Below are positions 1 through 11,215 of a DNA stretch of 11,215 bases, piece by piece (position 1 is the first letter of the stretch; each line of letters opens with the position of its first letter). The position numbers and the translations under genes are program-made. The notes beneath the pieces are model-generated. The model saw only the letters and a program-made list of their open reading frames with translations. It did no database searches and was not told where the DNA came from. Source of the stretch: Paraphysomonas bandaiensis (lineage: Eukaryota; Protista; Chrysophyceae); assembly GCA_965644295.1 (NCBI GenBank), contig CBFFRP010000652.1:1-11215 (forward strand), in the 5' to 3' direction.

Positions 1-384
1 AACAGATGATGGTGCGCCGGTAGGTGTGCTCGTTGGTATACCTGTTGGTACCGACGTCGGACCAGCTGTTGGAAGAGATGTGGGAGACGCAGTTGGAACG
101 CTAGATGGAACTGATGTGGGGAAACCACTTGGACGTGACGTTGGAAGAGACGACGGAGATGAAGATGGATAAGACGTCGGTAAACCAGTAGGTAAACTGG
201 ATGGAAGAGCAGACGGAATCGAAGTTGGGGTACTTGTTGGAAGACTTGTTGGTACACCAGTTGGGGATGATGTCGGAACTAATGTTGGGACCGCTGTAGG
301 TGCTGATGTCGGAATTGATGTTGGAAATCCAGTGGGGACTACAGACGGTACTGAACTTGGTACACTGGTTGGGAATGACGTCGT
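1..384 (-). repeat. P-[T/S]-x-x tetrapeptide linker (12-bp period), 128 aa visible, truncated by window edge
   Basis: Plus-strand NGG (Pro codon complement) recurs every 12 nt. Resembles the Pfam PT repeat (PF04886, XPTX tetrapeptide). Confidence 0.9.
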
Positions 385-3300
385 ATCGTCGGCACATACA
401 CCATCGACAGATCCATATGGACCAGGATGACAATCACCATTCACTATAGTAAACAACAACTGATCCTGTGCGCCACCAGACACACCGCAGAACTCCCAAG
501 TTACATCACCACTATCATCATCACATACACCTGTAGCACGGAAAACATATTCACCATCCTCCAAACATGAACCACATACTTCAATACTACCATTACCACC
601 CCCGCAAAAAGGCTCCGCATATGAGTGAAGAGTAGTCCTCGTGGAGTCCGTGATGTACCAAGCAGATTGAATGTAGTCAGGCAGAGAAACATTACCATAG
701 CTACCTTCACTCTCGGAACCAGTATGTAACACGCTATCAAGGAAATCGTTAAAGGTTATACCCCCACCACTCAAATCGTTACACCCTTCACATGCCTCAG
801 GGTATGACCATAGATTCTCCCACCATACCAAATCATATGTCTCCTCCGCGCGAGAATACTCAAAAGTCATACTCGTGTTGAATCCGCCATAATACTTATC
901 CATATACACACCGTCCTCAACTATCTGAACTGTCCAATGGATCTCCCATGGATAGGCCGGTACGTATGAATCACCGTTATCATCAACAGCATCCACTGTC
1001 ATATGATATAGCTGATCGATGTTCAAATCTGAAGGATAAATACAACCCGCTATAACCTCACAGTCACAATCCAATGTGAATTCTGTCAATGCACTATCCT
1101 CATCTCGGATTTGAACCCAATAACTGAAATTTGCTCCTGACCAACCGTCACCGAACTGGTCAAGCAAGGTTACAAAAAGACAAGTACCATTGACCGTATT
1201 ATTGACTATGGGATTGACTACATGATCCGTATACAGAGTACATTCGTCATAACACATCATATCATGATCAGGATTGGGGGTACCAAGCTCAGTTGGAACA
1301 GATGTAGGCTGACCACTTGGAACCCCTGTTGGAACGGCTGTCGGTGCAGATGTCGGTACAGAGGTAGGAACTGAAGTTGGAGACGATGTCGGAACAGAAG
1401 TAGGAACACCTGTTGGCAATGATGTCGGAACAGAGGTCGGGAACGCTGTTGGTAGTGATGTTGGGGAGGAAGATGGTATCGATGTCGGCACAGCAGATGG
1501 CACTGACGTTGGTGCACTTGATGGAACACTTGTAGGAGACGATGTTGGAACAGCTGTTGGTATTGATGTTGGCCTTCCTGTTGGTGTACTGCTAGGCTCG
1601 CCACTTGGAATGGAAGAAGGTTGCCCGCTGGGTTCCGACGACGGCAAACCCGTTGGCACACTGGTTGGAGATGACGTCGGAGTACCTGATGGTTGGGACG
1701 TAGGTTGTCCAGTAGGCTCAGATGTAGGAGATGATGTTGGAATAGACGTCGGTATCGCAGATGGAACCGATGTTGGAACAGATGATGGTGCGCCGGTAGG
1801 TGTGCTCGTTGGTATACCTGTTGGTACCGACGTCGGACCAGCTGTTGGAAGAGATGTGGGAGACGCAGTTGGAACGCTAGATGGAACTGATGTGGGGAAA
1901 CCACTTGGACGTGACGTTGGAAGAGACGACGGAGATGAAGATGGATAAGACGTCGGTAAACCAGTAGGTAAACTGGATGGAAGAGCAGACGGAATCGAAG
2001 TTGGGGTACTTGTTGGAAGACTTGTTGGTACACCAGTTGGGGATGATGTCGGAACTGATGTTGGGACCGCTGTAGGTGCTGATGTCGGAATTGATGTTGG
2101 AAATCCAGTGGGGACTACAGACGGTACTGAACTTGGTACACTGGTTGGGAATGACGTCGTATCGTCGGCACATACACCATCGACAGATCCATATGGACCA
2201 GGATGACAATCACCATTCACTATAGTAAACAACAACTGGTCCTGTGCGCCACCAGACACACCGCAGAACTCCCAAGTTACATCACCACTATCATCATCAC
2301 ATACACCTGTAGCACGGAAAACATATTCACCATCCTCCAAACATGAACCACATACTTCAATACTACCATTACCACCCCCGCAAAAAGGCTCCGCATATGA
2401 GTGAAGAGTAGTCCTCGTGGAGTCCGTGATGTACCAAGCAGATTGAATGTAGTCAGGCAGAGAAACATTACCATAGCTACCTTCACTCTCGGAACCAGTA
2501 TGTAACACGCTATCAAGGAAATCGTTAAAGGTTATACCCCCACCACTCAAATCGTTACACCCTTCACATGCCTCAGGGTATGACCATAGATTCTCCCACC
2601 ATACCAAATCATATGTCTCCTCCGCGCGAGAATACTCAAAAGTCATACTCGTGTTGAATCCGCCATAATACTTATCCATATACACACCGTCCTCAACTAT
2701 CTGAACTGTCCAATGGATCTCCCATGGATAGGCCGGTACGTATGAATCACCGTTATCATCAACAGCATCCACTGTCATATGATATAGCTGATCGATGTTC
2801 AAATCTGAAGGATAAATACAACCCGCTATAACCTCACAGTCACAATCCAATGTGAATTCTGTCAATGCACTATCCTCATCTCGGATTTGAACCCAATAAC
2901 TGAAATTTGCTCCTGACCAACCGTCACCGAACTGGTCAAGCAAGGTTACAAAAAGACAAGTACCATTGACCGTATTATTGACTATGGGATTGACTACATG
3001 ATCCGTATACAGAGTACATTCGTCATAACACATCATATCATGATCAGGATTGGGGGTACCAAGCTCAGTTGGAACAGATGTAGGCTGACCACTTGGAACC
3101 CCTGTTGGAACGGCTGTCGGTGCAGATGTCGGTACAGAGGTAGGAACTGAAGTTGGAGATGATGTCGGAACAGAAGTAGGAACACCTGTTGGCAATGATG
3201 TCGGAACAGAGGTCGGGAACGCTGTTGGTAGTGATGTTGGGGAGGAAGATGGTATCGATGTCGGCACAGCAGATGGCATTGACGTTGGTGCACTTGATGG

Positions 3301-6300
3301 AACACTTGTAGGAGACGATGTTGGAACAGCTGTTGGTATTGATGTTGGCCTTCCTGTTGGTGTACTGCTAGGCTCGCCACTTGGAATGGAAGAAGGTTGC
3401 CCGCTGGGTTCCGACGATGGCAAACCCGTTGGCACACTGGTTGGAGATGACGTCGGAGTACCTGATGGTTGGGACGTAGGTTGTCCAGTAGGCTCCAATG
3501 TAGGAGATGATGTTGGAATAGACGTCGGTATCGCAGATGGAACAGCTGTTGGTGTTGATGTTGGCCTTCCTGTTGGTGTACTGCTAGGCTCACCACTTGG
3601 AATGGAAGAAGGTTGTCCGCTGGGTTCCGACGATGGCAAACCCGTTGGCACACTGGTTGGAGATGACGTCGGAGTACCTGACGGTTCGGACGTAGGTTGT
3701 CCAGTAGGCTCAGATGTAGGAGATGATGTTGGAATAGACGTCGGTATCGCAGATGGAACAGCTGTTGGTATTGATGTTGGCCTTCCTGTTGGTGTACTGC
3801 TAGGCTCACCACTTGGAATGGAAGAAGGTTGCCCGCTGGGTTCCGACGACGGCAAACCCGTCGGTACACTGGTTGGAGATGACGTCGGAGTACCTGATGG
3901 TTGGGACGTAGGTTGTGCAGTAGGCTCAGATGTGGGAGAAGATGTAGGATCATTTGTAGGAATCGAAGATGGTGTCATGCTGGGCACTGATATCGGCGAA
4001 GCTGTGGGCACTGATGTCGGCATAGAAGTCGGTATCGTAGTGGGAATGTAAGAGGGACAACTGCTGGGTAAACTCGACGGAATTAAAGTTGGAGAAGCAG
4101 AAGGAATACTAGATGGGTTCGTTGACGGCATACTCGTGGGAAATGATGTAACGGCGTCGGAGCATACGTGTCCAATTGTTCCGTATGAGCCGGGATAACA
4201 TATACCATCTATGACAAAGATCTCGAATTCGGTCTGTGCTGATCCTATCTGCCCACAAAATTCCCACTCTACTTCATCACCGTCATCATCACACGCCCCA
4301 GTTGATCTGAAAACGTACTCTCCGTCAGGAAGACAGATATTACAACTACTACTATAACTTTCGTTGGAACCGCACAGCGGATCTGAAAAAGCGAACAATA
4401 TCTTGTGTGTGGAGTCACTTACGTACCACGACGACAAAAGATAGTCATTAGAGTCTGACATACCAAAGCTACCAGTACTACTTGAGCCTTCAACAACAAT
4501 CTCACCAATATAAGAATCAAAAGTAATTCCGTTGTCACTGAGTCCGTTACACCCCTCACATGCCTCAGGGTATGACCATAGGTTCTCCCACCATACCAAA
4601 TCATATGTCTCCTCCGCACGAGAATACTCAAAAGTCATACTCGTGTTGAATCCGCCATAATACTTATCCATATACACACCGTCCTCAACTATCTGAACTG
4701 TCCAATGGATCTCCCATGGATAGGCCGGTACGTATGAATCACCGTTATCATCAACAGCATCCACTGTCATATGATATAGCTGATCGATGTTTAAGTCTGA
4801 AGGATAAATACAACCCGCCATCGTTGTGCAGTTACAGTTCAGGCTATATACAACGGCTTGGGATTCTTCGCTGCGTATTTGAACCCAATAACTGAAATTT
4901 GCTCCAGGCCAACCGTCACCAAAGAGATCAAACATCGTCACATACAAACAAGAGGAATTAGTAACTTCTGACATCGTTGTACACTTATCGGAGCACAGAA
5001 TGTCGTCGCTCACATTCGGCGTGCCCAGCTCAGTTGGTACAGATGAAGGCAAACTACTCGGTTTTCCTGAAGGAGTAAATGTGGGTGCCGAAGTTGGAAT
5101 AGTGGTTGGAACAGAAGTAGGAACACAAGACGGGGCAGAACTTGGTTCACCACTTGGTACAGAGCTGGGATTGAAAGTCGGCATTGAAGTTGGAATCGCA
5201 GTTGGAGTAGATGTAGGAATCGAAGTAGGCACAGCACTGGGAACATAAGTCGGAATAGATGACGGTGAAGTTGTAGGAAGAGTAGTAGGAATTGAAGTGG
5301 GTATACCACTTGGTAAAGATGAGGGTATACTAGATGGAACACTGGTTGGAAAAGATGATGTACCACCATTACAGACTTGTTCTACAGGACCATATGCACC
5401 AGGATAGCAGACACCATCAATAATTATAAATTGTAACTCGTCCTGCTTGTCACCTGATACATCACAAAATTCCCACAACATGTTTTCTGGATCATGCGCA
5501 CCAGTCTGTCGGAAAATATAATCTCCATCCGGAAGGCATGACAAGCAGCTATCCGGAGCGTACATGTGGTCTACGCCACAGAAAGGTTTGCCATATGCTA
5601 CAACAGAGGTCAAGTCGGAAGCATTAGTAACATACCACGTGGTGCGAGTGTAATCCGAATTTCCCCCAGAACTAAAATCTTCAGCATCACCGTCATAGAT
5701 ACTTTTCACATAGTTGGCATAAGTAGCATATGTGCTGTTATCGTTCGACCCACAGGTGTCTACGCAATTCACGCAGGGTTCTGGCAGAACCCATAAATTC
5801 TGCCACCACAAAATGTCGTACGTATCTTCCATTCTGCTGTATTCGAACACCATGCTCGTGTTGTAACCACCGTAATACTTTTCCTGAAAAACACCATCAA
5901 CAACTATTTGAACAGTCCAAGTAATTTCCCAAAAATACTCCGGCACGATTGCATTTCCATTTTCATCAAATGCTTCAACAGTAAAATGGTACAACTGATC
6001 GATATTTATGTCTGAAGGACGCACACACCCCATCAGTTTCGAGCAGTTGCAGTTTACAGTTTCGCGAATTATGTTTGAGTCATCATCACGAACTTGTACC
6101 CAGTAAAACAAGCCGGCATCATCACCCCAACCATCACCAAATTGATCTGCAATTGTAACATAAAGACATGTCTCGTTACCAACAGGCTCATAATCACAGG
6201 TCAAGTTAGAAGTGATATTCACGGACGGCAAAGCTGTCGGAAGAAAAGATGGCACAGATGTTGGAGTAGATGTAGGAATCGAAGTAGGCACAGCACTGGG

Positions 6301-9300
6301 AACATAAGTCGGAATAGATGACGGTGAAGTTGTAGGAAGAGTAGTAGGAATTGAAGTGGGTATACCACTTGGTAAAGATGAGGGTATACTAGATGGAACA
6401 CTGGTTGGAAAAGATGACGTACCACCATTACAGACTTGTTCTACAGGACCATATGCACCAGGATAGCAGACACCATCAATAATTATAAATTGTAACTCGT
6501 CCTGCTTGTCACCTGATACATCACAAAATTCCCACAACATGTTTTCTGGATCATGCGCACCAGTCTGTCGGAAAATATAATCTCCATCCGGAAGGCATGA
6601 CAAGCAGCTATCCGGAGCGTACATGTGGTCTACGCCACAGAAAGGTTTGCCATATGCTACAACAGAGGTCAAGTCGGAAGCATTAGTAACATACCACGTG
6701 GTGCGAGTGTAATCCGAATTTCCCCCAGAACTAAAATCTTCAGCATCACCGTCATAGATACTTTTCACATAGTTGGCATAAGTAGCATATGTGCTGTTAT
6801 CGTTCGACCCACAGGTGTCTACGCAATTCACGCAGGGTTCTGGCAGAACCCATAAATTCTGCCACCACAAAATGTCGTACGTATCTTCCATTCTGCTGTA
6901 TTCGAACACCATGCTCGTGTTGTAACCACCGTAATACTTTTCCTGAAAAACACCATCAACAACTACTTGAACAGTCCAAGTAATTTCCCAAAAATACTCC
7001 GGCACGATTGCATTTCCATTTTCATCAAATGCTTCAACAGTAAAATGGTACAACTGATCGATATTTATGTCTGAAGGACGCACACACCCCATCAGTTTCG
7101 AGCAGTTGCAGTTTACAGTTTCGCGAATTATGTTTGAGTCATCATCACGAACTTGTACCCAGTAAAACAAGCCGGCATCATCACCCCAACCATCACCAAA
7201 TTGATCTGCAATTGTAACATAAAGACATGTCTCGTTACCAACAGGCTCATAATCACAGGTCAAGTTAGAAGTGATATTCACGGACGGCAAAGCTGTCGGA
7301 AGAAAAGATGGCACAGATGTTGGAGTAGATGTAGGAATCGAAGTAGGCACAGCACTGGGAACATAAGTCGGAATATAAGAAGGATTCGCCGAAGGTATAG
7401 TCGTCGGAAAACTGGATGGAACACTACTAGGAGAAGTACTAGGAACCCCAGTCGGTCCAAACGTAGGCAACGAAGAAGGCAACAGACTAGGTCGAGAAGA
7501 TGGTGGAGAACTAGGAAATGATGTTGGAGTAGCAGAAGGAATACTAGATGGGTTCGTTGACGGCATACTCGTGGGAAATGATGTAACGGCGTCGGAGCAT
7601 ACGTGTCCAATTGTTCCGTATGAGCCGGGATAACATATACCATCTATGACAAAGATCTCGAATTCGGTCTGTGCTGATCCTATCTGCCCACAAAATTCCC
7701 ACTCTACTTCATCACCGTCATCATCACACGCCCCAGTTGATCTGAAAACGTACTCTCCGTCAGGAAGACAGATATTACAACTACTACTATAACTTTCGTT
7801 GGAACCGCACAGCGGATCTGAAAAAGCGAACAATATCTTGTGTGTGGAGTCACTTACGTACCACGACGACAAAAGATAGTCATTAGAATCTAACATACCA
7901 AAGCTACCAGTACTACTTGAGCCTTCAACAATAATCTCACCAATATAAGAATCAAAAGTAATTCCGTTGTCACTGAGTCCGTTACACCCCTCACATGCCT
8001 CAGGGTATGACCATAGATTCTCCCACCATACCAAATCATATGTCTCCTCCGCGCGAGAATACTCAAAAGTCATACTCGTGTTGAATCCGCCATAATACTT
8101 ATCCATATACACACCGTCCTCAACTATCTGAACTGTCCAATGGATCTCCCATGGATAGGCCGGTACGTATGAATCACCGTTATCATCAACAGCATCCACT
8201 GTCATATGATATAGCTGATCGATGTTCAAATCTGAAGGATAAATACAACCCGCTATAACCTCACAGTCACAATCCAATGTGAATTCTGTCAATGCACTAT
8301 GCTCATCTCGGATTTGAACCCAATAACTGAAATTTGCTCCTGACCAACCGTCACCGAACTGGTCAAGCAAGGTTACAAAAAGACAAGTACCATTGACCGT
8401 ATTATTGACTATGGGATTGACTACATGATCCGTATACAGAGTACATTCGTCATAACACATCATATCATGATCAGGATTGGGGGTACCAAGCTCAGTTGGA
8501 ACAGATGTAGGCTGACCACTTGGAACCCCTGTTGGAACGGCTGTCGGTGCAGATGTCGGTACAGAGGTGGGAACTGAAGTTGGAGACGATGTCGGAACAG
8601 AAGTAGGAACACCTGTTGGCAATGATGTCGGAACAGAGGTCGGGAACGCTGTTGGTAGTGATGTTGGGGAGGAAGATGGTATCGATGTCGGCACAGCAGA
8701 TGGCATTGACGTTGGTGCACTTGATGGAACACTTGTAGGAGACGATGTTGGAACAGCTGTTGGTATTGATGTTGGCCTTCCTGTTGGTGTACTGCTAGGC
8801 TCGCCACTTGGAATGGAAGAAGGTTGCCCGCTGGGTTCCGACGACGGCAAACCCGTTGGCACACTGGTTGGAGATGACGTCGGAGTACCTGATGGTTGGG
8901 ACGTAGGTTGTCCAGTAGGCTCAGATGTAGGAGATGATGTTGGAATAGACGTCGGTATCGCAGATGGAACAGCTGTTGGTATTGATGTTGGCCTTCCTGT
9001 TGGTGCACTGCTAGGCTCACCACTTGGAATGGAAGAAGGTTGCCCGCTGGGTTCCGACGACGGCAAACCCGTTGGCACACTGGATGGAGATGACGTCGGA
9101 GAACCTGATGGTTGGGACGTAGGTTGTCCAGTAGGCTCAGATGTGGGAGATGATGTCGGTATAGGTGTTGGCAGTGAACTCGGAAGTGTTGTTGGTGTAG
9201 ACGAAGGCAAAGGCGTCGGAACAACAGAAGGGACTGCGGTGGGACATGAAGATGGCAGAGAGGATGGAAAAGTGGATGGTAGAGCAGACGGAATCGAAGT

Positions 9301-11214
9301 TGGGGTACTTGTTGGAAGACTTGTTGGTACACCAGTTGGAGATGATGTCGGAACTAATGTTGGGACCGCTGTAGGTGCTGATGTCGGAATTGATGTTGGA
9401 AATCCAGTGGGGACTACAGACGGTACTGAACTTGGTACACTGGTTGGGAATGACGTCGTATCGTCGGCACATACACCATCGACAGATCCATATGGACCAG
9501 GATGACAATCACCATTCACTATAGTAAACAACAACTGATCCTGTGCGCCACCAGACACACCGCAGAACTCCCAAGTTACATCACCACTATCATCATCACA
9601 TACACCTGTAGCACGGAAAACATATTCACCATCCTCCAAACATGAACCACATACTTCAATACTACCATTACCACCCCCGCAAAAAGGCTCCGCATATGAG
9701 TGAAGAGTAGTCCTCGTGGAGTCCGTGATGTACCAAGCAGATTGAATGTAGTCAGGCAGAGAAACATTACCATAGCTACCTTCACTCTCGGAACCAGTAT
9801 GTAACACGCTATCAAGGAAATCGTTAAAGGTTATACCCCCACCACTCAAATCGTTACACCCTTCACATGCCTCAGGGTATGACCATAGATTCTCCCACCA
9901 TACCAAATCATATGTCTCCTCCGCGCGAGAATACTCAAAAGTCATACTCGTGTTGAATCCGCCATAATACTTATCCATATACACACCGTCCTCAACTATC
10001 TGAACTGTCCAATGGATCTCCCATGGATAGGCCGGTACGTATGAATCACCGTTATCATCAACAGCATCCACTGTCATATGATATAGCTGATCGATGTTCA
10101 AATCTGAAGGATAAATACAACCCGCTATAACCTCACAGTCACAATCCAATGTGAATTCTGTCAATGCACTATCCTCATCTCGGATTTGAACCCAATAACT
10201 GAAATTTGCTCCTGACCAACCGTCACCGAACTGGTCAAGCAAGGTTACAAAAAGACAAGTACCATTGACCGTATTATTGACTATGGGATTGACTACATGA
10301 TCCGTATACAGAGTACATTCGTCATAACACATCATATCATGATCAGGATTGGGGGTACCAAGCTCAGTTGGAACAGATGTAGGCTGACCACTTGGAACCC
10401 CTGTTGGAACGGCTGTCGGTGCAGATGTCGGTACAGAGGTGGGAACTGAAGTTGGAGACGATGTCGGAACAGAAGTAGGAACACCTGTTGGCAATGATGT
10501 CGGAACAGAGGTCGGGAACGCTGTTGGTAGTGATGTTGGGGAGGAAGATGGTATCGATGTCGGCACAGCAGATGGCATTGACGTTGGTGCACTTGATGGA
10601 ACACTTGTAGGAGACGATGTTGGAACAGCTGTTGGTATTGATGTTGGCCTTCCTGTTGGTGTACTGCTAGGCTCGCCACTTGGAATGGAAGAAGGTTGCC
10701 CGCTGGGTTCCGACGACGGCAAACCCGTTGGCACACTGGTTGGAGATAATGTTGGAATAGACGTCGGTATCGCAGATGGAACAGCTGTTGGTATTGATGT
10801 TGGCCTTCCTGTTGGTGTACTGCTAGGCTCACCACTTGGAATAGAAGAAGGTTGCCCGCTGGGTTCCGACGACGGCAAACTCGTCGGCACACTGGTTGGA
10901 GATGACGTCGGAGTACCTGACGGTTGGGACGTAGGTTGTCCAGTAGGCTCAGATGTAGGAGATGATGTTGGAATAGACGTCGGTATCGCAGATGGAACAG
11001 CTGTTGGTATTGGTGTTGGCCTTCCTGTTGGTGTACTGCTAGGCTCGCCACTTGGAATGGAAGAAGGTTGCCCGCTGGGTTCCGACGACGGCAAACCCGT
11101 TGGCACACTGGTTGGAGGTGACGTCGGAGTACCTGATGGTTGGGACGTAGGTTGTCCAGTAGGCTCAGATGTAGGAGATGATGTTGGAATAGACGTCGGT
11201 ATCGCAGATGGAAC
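1..11214 (-). CDS. Giant (>3738 aa, partial at both ends) modular protein with 7 Cys-rich globular modules separated by Pro/Thr/Ser (PT-repeat, mucin-like) linkers; probable secreted or cell-surface glycoprotein
   Basis: No TTA/CTA/TCA found in plus-strand frame-1 triplets, so no minus-strand stop. Same frame at both ends (11214: VPSAIPTSIPTSSPTSEP...; position 1: ...PTSTPTGAPSSV). All repeat offsets (1776, 1059, 3435, 7203, 9075, 216, 156) are multiples of 3. Diverged module variants conserve amino-acid motifs in this frame while synonymous positions change. No intron is needed. Confidence 0.95.
385..1284 (-). other. Globular module, variant A (copy A1, 300 aa)
   Basis: Translation: GTPNPDHDMMCYDECTLYTDHVVNPIVNNTVNGTCLFVTLLDQFGDGWSGANFSYWVQIRDEDSALTEFTLDCDCEVIAGCIYPSDLNIDQLYHMTVDAVDDNGDSYVPAYPWEIHWTVQIVEDGVYMDKYYGGFNTSMTFEYSRAEETYDLVWWENLWSYPEACEGCNDLSGGGITFNDFLDSVLHTGSESEGSYGNVSLPDYIQSAWYITDSTRTTLHSYAEPFCGGGNGSIEVCGSCLEDGEYVFRATGVCDDDSGDVTWEFCGVSGGAQDQLLFTIVNGDCHPGPYGSVDGVCADD. 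Contains 15 Cys. Boundaries approximate. Confidence 0.9.
1285..2160 (-). repeat. P-[T/S]-x-x linker, 292 aa, containing one 216-bp subunit (1549-1764)
   Basis: For example PTSEPTGQPTSQPSGTPTSSPTSVPTGLPSSEPSGQPSSIPSGEPSSTPTGR; Pro at every 4th residue. Confidence 0.9.
2161..3060 (-). other. Globular module, variant A (copy A2)
   Basis: Near-identical to 385-1284 at offset 1776. One synonymous difference noticed (463 a vs 2239 g; Asp codon). Confidence 0.9.
3061..4152 (-). repeat. P-[T/S]-x-x linker, 364 aa, with ~3 tandem 216-bp subunits
   Basis: aacagctgttggt(a/g)ttgatgttggcc starts at 3325, 3541 and 3757 (third copy partial). Confidence 0.9.
4153..5025 (-). other. Globular module, variant B (291 aa): unique N-terminus, A-like middle, B-type C-terminal half
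   Basis: GTPNVSDDILCSDKCTTMSEVTNSSCLYVTMFDLFGDGWPGANFSYWVQIRSEESQAVVYSLNCNCTTMAGCIYPSDLNIDQLYH...WWENLWSYPEACEGCNGLSDNGITFDSYIGEIVVEGSSSTGSFGMSDSNDYLLSSWYVSDSTHKILFAFSDPLCGSNESYSSSCNICLPDGEYVFRSTGACDDDGDEVEWEFCGQIGSAQTEFEIFVIDGICYPGSYGTIGHVCSDA. Contains 15 Cys that align with A. Confidence 0.9.
5026..5361 (-). repeat. P-[T/S]-x-x linker, 112 aa
   Basis: 12-bp Pro periodicity; no 216-bp subunit. Confidence 0.88.
5362..6222 (-). other. Globular module, variant C (copy C1, 287 aa)
   Basis: VNITSNLTCDYEPVGNETCLYVTIADQFGDGWGDDAGLFYWVQVRDDDSNIIRETVNCNCSKLMGCVRPSDINIDQLYHFTVEAFDENGNAIVPEYFWEITWTVQIVVDGVFQEKYYGGYNTSMVFEYSRMEDTYDILWWQNLWVLPEPCVNCVDTCGSNDNSTYATYANYVKSIYDGDAEDFSSGGNSDYTRTTWYVTNASDLTSVVAYGKPFCGVDHMYAPDSCLSCLPDGDYIFRQTGAHDPENMLWEFCDVSGDKQDELQFIIIDGVCYPGAYGPVEQVCNGG. 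Contains 14 Cys and is clearly homologous to A and B. Confidence 0.9.
6223..6420 (-). repeat. P-[T/S]-x-x linker, 66 aa (shortest)
   Basis: 12-bp Pro periodicity between the two C modules. Confidence 0.88.
6421..7281 (-). other. Globular module, variant C (copy C2)
   Basis: Near-identical to 5362-6222 at offset 1059. One Ile/Val difference noticed (caactatttg vs caactacttg). Confidence 0.9.
7282..7587 (-). repeat. P-[T/S]-x-x linker, 102 aa
   Basis: 12-bp Pro periodicity. Confidence 0.88.
7588..8487 (-). other. Globular module, chimeric A(N-half)/B(C-half), 300 aa
   Basis: 7588-~7990 matches B (4153-~4555, offset 3435). ~8017-8487 matches A (offset 7203), including A-specific alleles ccatagattc and ccgcgcgaga. 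Confidence 0.88.
8488..9459 (-). repeat. P-[T/S]-x-x linker, 324 aa, with ~2 tandem 216-bp subunits
   Basis: Subunit starts at 8752 and 8968 (second copy partial), followed by a unique stretch at ~9160-9280. Confidence 0.9.
9460..10359 (-). other. Globular module, variant A (copy A3)
   Basis: Near-identical to 385-1284 at offset 9075. Confidence 0.9.
10360..11214 (-). repeat. P-[T/S]-x-x linker, 285 aa visible, with three 216-bp-family subunits, one internally deleted by 60 bp
   Basis: Subunit starts at 10624, 10780 (spacing 156) and 10996 (spacing 216). Confidence 0.9.
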
Positions 11215-11215
11215 C

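Follow-up and report, generated by a model that had tools for sequence, protein, structure and literature searches.

A giant open reading frame encoding seven modules

We analyzed an 11,215-base stretch of Paraphysomonas bandaiensis DNA (assembly GCA_965644295.1, contig CBFFRP010000652.1, positions 1 to 11,215), here called the window, and found that it encodes a repeated Cys-rich module carried on linkers rich in proline, threonine and serine (PTS). Six-frame translation showed that the minus strand at frame offset 1 is open across the entire window, with 3738 codons and 0 stops, while the other five frames contain 108–281 stops each. The program-made list of open reading frames (ORFs) omits this frame because it runs off both window ends. 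In the translation, PTS-rich low-complexity stretches alternate regularly with seven folded-looking blocks of 288–303 residues rich in Cys, Trp and Tyr. By its architecture, PTS regions alternating with Cys-rich folded domains, the protein belongs to the mucin-like or PTS-rich modular extracellular glycoproteins, and the window appears to be the internal portion of one giant, intron-free, apparently transcribed gene of a marine protist. The features are listed below in the order of translation; each module has an N-terminal lobe (N-lobe), a hinge and a C-terminal lobe (C-lobe).

1..11214, minus strand: single open reading frame of 3738 codons, part of a giant gene; 0 stops, open at both window ends
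10354..11214, minus strand: PTS linker, 287 aa in the window, with 72-aa higher-order repeats
9445..10353, minus strand: module copy 1, variant A, 303 aa, assigned by motifs and copy comparison
8482..9444, minus strand: PTS linker, 321 aa
7573..8481, minus strand: module copy 2, hybrid of an A-type N-lobe with a B-type hinge and C-lobe; overall protein identity 75% with A, 88% with B
7270..7572, minus strand: PTS linker, 101 aa
6406..7269, minus strand: module copy 3, variant C, 288 aa, used for structure prediction; N-lobe ~6850–7233, variable hinge ~6700–6849, C-lobe ~6406–6699
6211..6405, minus strand: PTS linker, 65 aa
5347..6210, minus strand: module copy 4, variant C, 99.7% identical to copy 3
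5014..5346, minus strand: PTS linker, 111 aa
4138..5013, minus strand: module copy 5, variant B, 292 aa; N-lobe core near-identical to A in DNA, flanks diverged
3055..4137, minus strand: PTS linker, 361 aa, with 2.9 copies of a 216-nt repeat
2146..3054, minus strand: module copy 6, variant A, assigned by copy comparison
1279..2145, minus strand: PTS linker, 289 aa
370..1278, minus strand: module copy 7, variant A, assigned by copy comparison
1..369, minus strand: PTS linker, 123 aa in the window

A non-coding artefact as the origin of this frame was excluded. Between the A and C modules the synonymous sites are saturated (proportion of synonymous differences, pS, 0.86), but the nonsynonymous proportion (pN) is 0.32; the frame is therefore under protein-level constraint and not open by chance. 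Since only the minus-strand frame is stop-free, plus-strand ORFs of 82–312 aa were rejected as genes; they were judged to be artefacts that arise antisense to the repetitive DNA of the linkers. The long ones among them (112–312 aa, for example at 8567–9505, 3386–4051 and 1610–1948) are Gly/Val/Asp-rich and lie antisense to PTS-coding DNA.

An earlier note on this DNA had proposed an undescribed extracellular domain of ~290 aa, present as variants A, B and C that share 12 ordered motifs. All 12 motifs occur in the proposed order in each of the seven copies, and 11 of them occur in no other frame, the trivial CxxC being the exception. The three variant types were recovered, but there are seven copies (three A, two C, one B and one A/B hybrid, at 7573–8481). 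Identical in protein sequence are the three A copies (100%), and the two C copies nearly so (99.7%); between variants, identity falls to 63% for A and B, 50% for A and C, and 48% for B and C. The N-lobe is the most conserved region among variants (61–84% identity), and the hinge (24–52%) and C-lobe (45–48%) are the most variable. Each copy is very acidic, with 46–53 Asp and Glu against 5–11 Lys and Arg, and contains 9 Trp, 19–21 Tyr and 14–15 Cys.

The linkers consist of 67–70% Pro, Ser and Thr (about 69%), and the step from one proline to the next is exactly 4 residues in 97% of cases, in tetrads of the xP[ST][ST] type that run through all linkers (for example 3055–4137). Higher-order repeats of 216 nt (72 aa) lie inside the linkers at 3322–3949, 8749–9164 and 10742–11214. 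The strict proline period suggests a regular extended rod, probably glycosylated or hydroxylated, rather than random mucin sequence.

This beads-on-a-string layout with its long PTS linkers would also suit an explanation that we consider possible, although it falls well short of our preferred one: the modules may be mechanical beads, that is, folded and disulfide-locked structural or cross-linking spacers that lack a specific ligand and give elasticity and cohesion to mucilage, a coat or adhesive strands. The Cys count bears on this explanation. It is odd (15) in variants A and B and 14 in C (for example 9445–10353 and 4138–5013), and an unpaired Cys in A and B modules could permit intermolecular disulfide cross-links.

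Predicted fold and conserved positions of the module

An AlphaFold2 model of copy 3 was built with a 49-sequence alignment. The model is all-beta, with a mean predicted local distance difference test score (pLDDT) of 88.5 and a predicted template modeling score of 0.88, which bears out the earlier guess of a beta-sandwich fold. It comprises a nine-strand sandwich at residues ~13–140 (pLDDT 95–98), a poorly defined hinge at ~150–190 and a second sandwich at ~190–288. The C-lobe modeled alone with 109 sequences reached a pLDDT of 83.6 and is predicted to be a smaller Ig/CnaB-like sandwich. Thus the proposed length of ~290 aa was accurate for the module as a whole (288–303 aa), but the unit contains two beta-sandwich domains, separable from each other, with a variable hinge between them, and some proteins carry the C-lobe alone. 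An origin of the two lobes by internal duplication was considered and not accepted: the profile–profile probability was 24%, with a suggestive register.

Among family members that are ~25% identical, the invariant or near-invariant N-lobe positions (copy-3 numbering throughout) are C15, D22, F24-G25-D26-G27-W28, C54, C62, W94-E95, W98 and G114; those of the C-lobe are D228-G229, Y231, R234, G237, W246, F248-C249, G253, F261, G266 and C268. Four conserved N-lobe elements fall on odd-numbered strand connections, namely the DxFGDGW turn (strands 1–2), the C54–C62 loop (3–4), the W-E turn (5–6) and the YYGG-N turn (7–8). Since odd-numbered connections of an all-antiparallel sandwich are expected at the same end, these loops should lie together at one apex of the modeled N-lobe. 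The near-invariance of acidic and aromatic loop residues at such low overall identity looks more like a functional site than simple packing, which counts against mechanical beads. In principle the invariant acidic residues D22, D26 and E95 could also be catalytic, as in a small beta-sandwich enzyme acting on glycans or in redox chemistry. We consider an enzyme highly improbable, as no catalytic family was matched by sequence or by fold, and tandem display on mucin linkers together with use as a receptor head is typical of binding modules.

Structural comparison gave weak neighbours only. Those closest to the N-lobe were TerD-type Ca2+-binding sandwiches (PDB 2qz7, 2kxt and 3ibz), at 116–120 aligned residues and a root-mean-square deviation of 3.6; the N-lobe and TerD are both acidic sandwiches, and Pfam TerD matched none of 49 family members. 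The C-lobe weakly resembled SpyCatcher/CnaB, pilin, type IX secretion system C-terminal and DUF3244-type small sandwiches, and Pfam Cna_B did not match it. CnaB domains are known for isopeptide bonds, unlike the Cys-locked C-lobe, in which C249 and C268 are invariant. The likeness to pilin and CnaB stalk domains is a further point for mechanical beads. Foldseek against the PDB returned nothing at E ≤ 1e-3, whether the query was the whole model or the C-lobe. In the ESM Atlas, searches by features scored 0.77–0.84, under the useful range; searches by shape gave TM < 0.4 for the whole model and TM 0.55–0.58 for the C-lobe, to generic small sandwiches. These neighbours raise the question of naming: the two lobes may be strongly diverged members of known superfamilies, a TerD/C2/PLAT-like Ca2+ sandwich followed by a CnaB/Ig-like domain, and hence no new fold family. 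We find this classification unlikely; it concerns the name alone and is compatible with the functional reading given below.

The module defines a family with receptor-like relatives

Searches of curated libraries with variants A, B and C matched 0 families of Pfam-A and NCBIfam at E ≤ 10. When 49 diverse family members were scanned singly against Pfam, no family was matched by more than one of them, and the best E value was 0.013. In the PDB, the best single-sequence match was an unrelated isomerase at E 0.28, and the three profiles (whole module, N-lobe, C-lobe) gave nothing or E ≥ 0.79. Literature searches on motif strings of the module returned nothing relevant. No relative was found in a prokaryote genome collection or in viral contigs by pattern-based scans, which have limited sensitivity, and a scan of metagenome contigs gave eight short loci only. 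The Pfam, profile and Foldseek comparisons thus yielded no full-length match to a characterized family and, to judge from all the libraries and texts that were searched, the family appears not to have been described before, in agreement with the earlier note.

Relatives are nevertheless numerous. An exhaustive profile search over 1.84 billion cluster representatives (clusters at 50% identity) yielded 446 representatives at E ≤ 1e-3, 187 at E ≤ 1e-10 and 48 at E ≤ 1e-30; the nearest relative is 57% identical to variant A. A word-index protein search had returned four short metagenome fragments from one module or from the 49-sequence profile, and 12 from the relative P0009. It misses most of the family because of its length filter and word index; the exhaustive search exposed it. 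Among the sources that were sampled, most were marine metagenomes (Tara, JGI, one long-read assembly from ENA) and protist transcriptomes. The closest relatives under a species name are a transcript from an MMETSP transcriptome labeled Mesodinium pulex and three partial proteins in an NCBI record labeled Symbiodinium microadriaticum.

The family signature reads C..DxFGDGW..C..WE..W..YYGG in the N-lobe, followed by L.DG.Y..R..G..W.FC..G..F..G.C in the C-lobe. It was found in 7/7 window copies and in 50 full-length segments of 152 fetched proteins, a set made up of listed matches and the fragments from the first search. Mapping of the profile on relatives placed the N-lobe at ~20–167 and the C-lobe at ~200–300 of the profile positions. 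Almost everywhere an N-lobe is followed by a C-lobe, and the hinge between them differs greatly in length; P0068 and P0129 contain arrays of the C-lobe only.

The domain company and topology of the relatives agree with the extracellular location that the earlier note had proposed. Many relatives have a hydrophobic, signal-peptide-like segment directly ahead of the module, and membrane-like segments after it, either one near the C-terminus or several beyond a REJ region. Such starts and downstream membrane segments place the module outside the cell. Its partners include Lectin_C in P0020 (a C-type lectin beside the module), LRR in P0027 and P0135, FG-GAP_2 propeller repeats in P0101, P0110 and P0118, and REJ, of the polycystin-1/sperm receptor type, in P0022, P0042 and P0044 by Pfam; the Pfam PT repeat was also matched in relatives. 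Use as a single N-terminal head on REJ, LRR, FG-GAP and lectin proteins makes a pure spacer role for the module less likely.

Several relatives have a receptor-like layout. P0022, P0042, P0044, P0046 and L003 are protist proteins of 2700–3100 aa in which a single module lies close to the N-terminus and several membrane-like segments follow. Pfam scans of three of them (P0022, P0042 and P0044) place REJ between the module and the membrane-like segments. Proteins of the P0022/P0042/P0044/P0046 type look like polycystin-1-like receptors headed by the module. In P0061 (1193 aa), the module at residues 8–287 is followed by about eight membrane-like segments, with no Pfam match, and this protein may be a module-headed multi-pass receptor or channel. 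The module in P0022, P0042, P0044 and P0046 occupies an N-terminal place comparable with that of the C-type lectin, LRR and WSC heads of polycystin-1 and sea-urchin REJ receptors, which suggests that it takes the place of lectin/LRR heads in REJ/polycystin-like receptors. The comparison is a positional analogy only, and the window protein contains no REJ region in its available 3738 residues.

The giant array itself also has a counterpart. A 42-kb environmental contig (ENA ERZ25071330, ctg573745_7x_l; L004:5962-14061 and L013:1-11869) carries a homologous array with a signal-peptide-like start and modules that continue to the contig end, at least 14 of them in two stretches with a period of ~1050–1580 nt. 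Giant tandem arrays of the module are therefore conserved in at least one further organism. Gene calling broke this array into four products (686, 1088, 6241 and 567 residues); the reading frame changes from one product to the next, and these changes may be long-read indel errors or introns.

Duplication and exchange among module copies

The module copies bear traces of exchange. Copy 2 (7573–8481) is an exact chimera of an A N-lobe and a B C-lobe: its DNA is 99.3% identical to A across the N-half and 98.8% identical to B across the C-half, and the switch lies near the CEGCN hinge. In copy 5 (4138–5013), a core of 91 codons differs from A at only ~7 nucleotides and lies between flanks that are synonymously saturated. 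Both copies show patchwork gene conversion between modules. Furthermore, a tandem duplication occupies the gene's last two stretches of 1776 bases in the window (1–1776 versus 1777–3552), which are 99.5% identical, and the duplicated unit comprises a linker, a module A and a linker. Variants would thus arise through duplication plus gene conversion that is able to swap lobes.

Lobe swapping of this kind could serve a diversifying recognition or variable-surface system, acting in self/non-self discrimination, mating, recognition of prey or pathogens, or evasion. In line with such a system are the exact chimera in copy 2 and the A-identical core of copy 5 amid saturated flanks, the far greater variability of the hinge and C-lobe than of the N-lobe, and the many near-identical and 95–99% variant contigs that a DNA run places on the conserved core. 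Just three variant types are present, however, and copies of the same type are near-identical, as ordinary concerted evolution gives; no positive selection was found, pN being well below pS everywhere compared within the window. We therefore regard a diversifying system as improbable.

The DNA run in question is that of coded organism B, which gave 197 contigs on window 4000–6400 (119 at ≥ 99% and 78 at 95–99%). Their depth peaks sharply at 4567–4809, the conserved N-lobe core, and hints at many more paralogous module copies in that organism than the seven of the window, though summed contig depth is not a copy number.

Transcription and intron content

For a 3.1-kb stretch, 0.37–0.91 of sampled words were present in runs from 12 studies, among them several libraries of marine metatranscriptomes as well as DNA runs of coded organisms A–C. 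Window 4000–6400 was compared with contigs of four datasets: two that are clearly RNA libraries, a further run that is probably RNA, and a DNA run. Most contig pieces agreed at ≥ 99%, and one 1062-base RNA-library contig differed by one base. The contigs of these datasets showed no joint in this interval, and no intron is therefore visible in window 4000–6400.

Discussion

The protein encoded in the window is best explained, in our opinion, as a giant mucin-like glycoprotein that carries multivalent binding or adhesion modules, a reading to which we give somewhat better than even credence. It would be a secreted or cell-surface protein of the beads-on-a-string type, in which the stalk is rich in Pro, Ser and Thr and probably heavily O-glycosylated, and the beads are at least seven acidic, two-domain, disulfide-rich modules. 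The module would serve as an extracellular ligand-binding or adhesion head, its ligand likely a glycan or a surface and its binding possibly assisted by Ca2+. We favour a binding head because the module is extremely acidic, its loops hold invariant Asp, Glu and Trp, and its nearest, though weak, structural neighbours are Ca2+-binding sandwiches. The window protein would display the module multivalently on glycosylated stalks, and receptor-like relatives of the REJ/polycystin-like, LRR, C-type lectin and FG-GAP kinds would each carry one such head.

Several points weigh against this interpretation. The ends of the gene, and hence any signal peptide or anchor, fall beyond the window. That this protein is secreted, carries O-glycans, has its site at the apex, binds Ca2+ or a glycan and acts in adhesion is inferred, and its ligand, metal and localization are likewise putative. 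Loop clustering and disulfide pairing are deduced from strand order alone, and the roles of the conserved Trp, Gly and Asp residues may be structural and nothing more. The RNA support consists of assembled contigs from RNA libraries, which can contain DNA. Finally, short-read contigs break at repeat borders, so the module order is that given by the assembly.

Beta-sandwich beads rich in Cys and mounted on PTS stalks are a familiar architecture, not a new principle, and are documented in diatom adhesive proteins (10.1101/2023.03.06.531300). The nearest known counterparts of the window protein are mucin-like or hydroxyproline-rich surface glycoproteins of algae and diatoms. In the adhesive trails of Craspedostauros australis, the giant PTS-rich proteins CaTrailin4, Ca5609 and CaFAP1 were described, with PTS-rich regions interspersed with 6-Cys repeats and with suggested mechanical roles (10.1101/2023.03.06.531300), a precedent that speaks for mechanical beads in the window protein as well. 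Both systems have very large, repetitive, intron-poor genes in which Pro/Thr/Ser regions alternate with Cys repeats, and a secreted or surface location is expected for both. They differ in their folded parts: the diatom proteins contain 6-Cys repeats of undescribed function together with CAA and GDPH domains, and the window module is two-lobed, ~290 aa long and has 14–15 Cys, a contrast drawn from descriptions. Pfam CAA (PF20597) matched neither the window variants nor any of the 49 family members.

A bolder extension of the binding-head reading, which we put forward only tentatively, is that the modules form a protist-wide new family of Ca2+-assisted glycan or surface heads with an apex site in the N-lobe (DxFGDGW, WE..W and YYGG). 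Under that extension, held with the same reserve, the hinge and C-lobe would tune or present the apex site, lobe conversion would yield new combinations, and the head would signal into polycystin/REJ-like receptors.

Surface proteins determine how marine protists stick, aggregate, sink and sense prey, mates, bacteria and viruses, and most of these proteins are unannotated. The present analysis defines a recurrent building block of such surfaces, which represents at least 446 clusters (50% identity) and comes with domain boundaries, conserved candidate site residues, a confident model and a seed alignment; this makes the module a concrete candidate for a new family entry. It recurs in the sampled marine metagenomes, is present at ≥ 99% in several marine metatranscriptome libraries, and serves in giant mucin-like arrays as well as at the head of receptor-like proteins. 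If the protist-wide reading is true, the module family would be a hitherto unrecognized vocabulary with which marine plankton sense and adhere.

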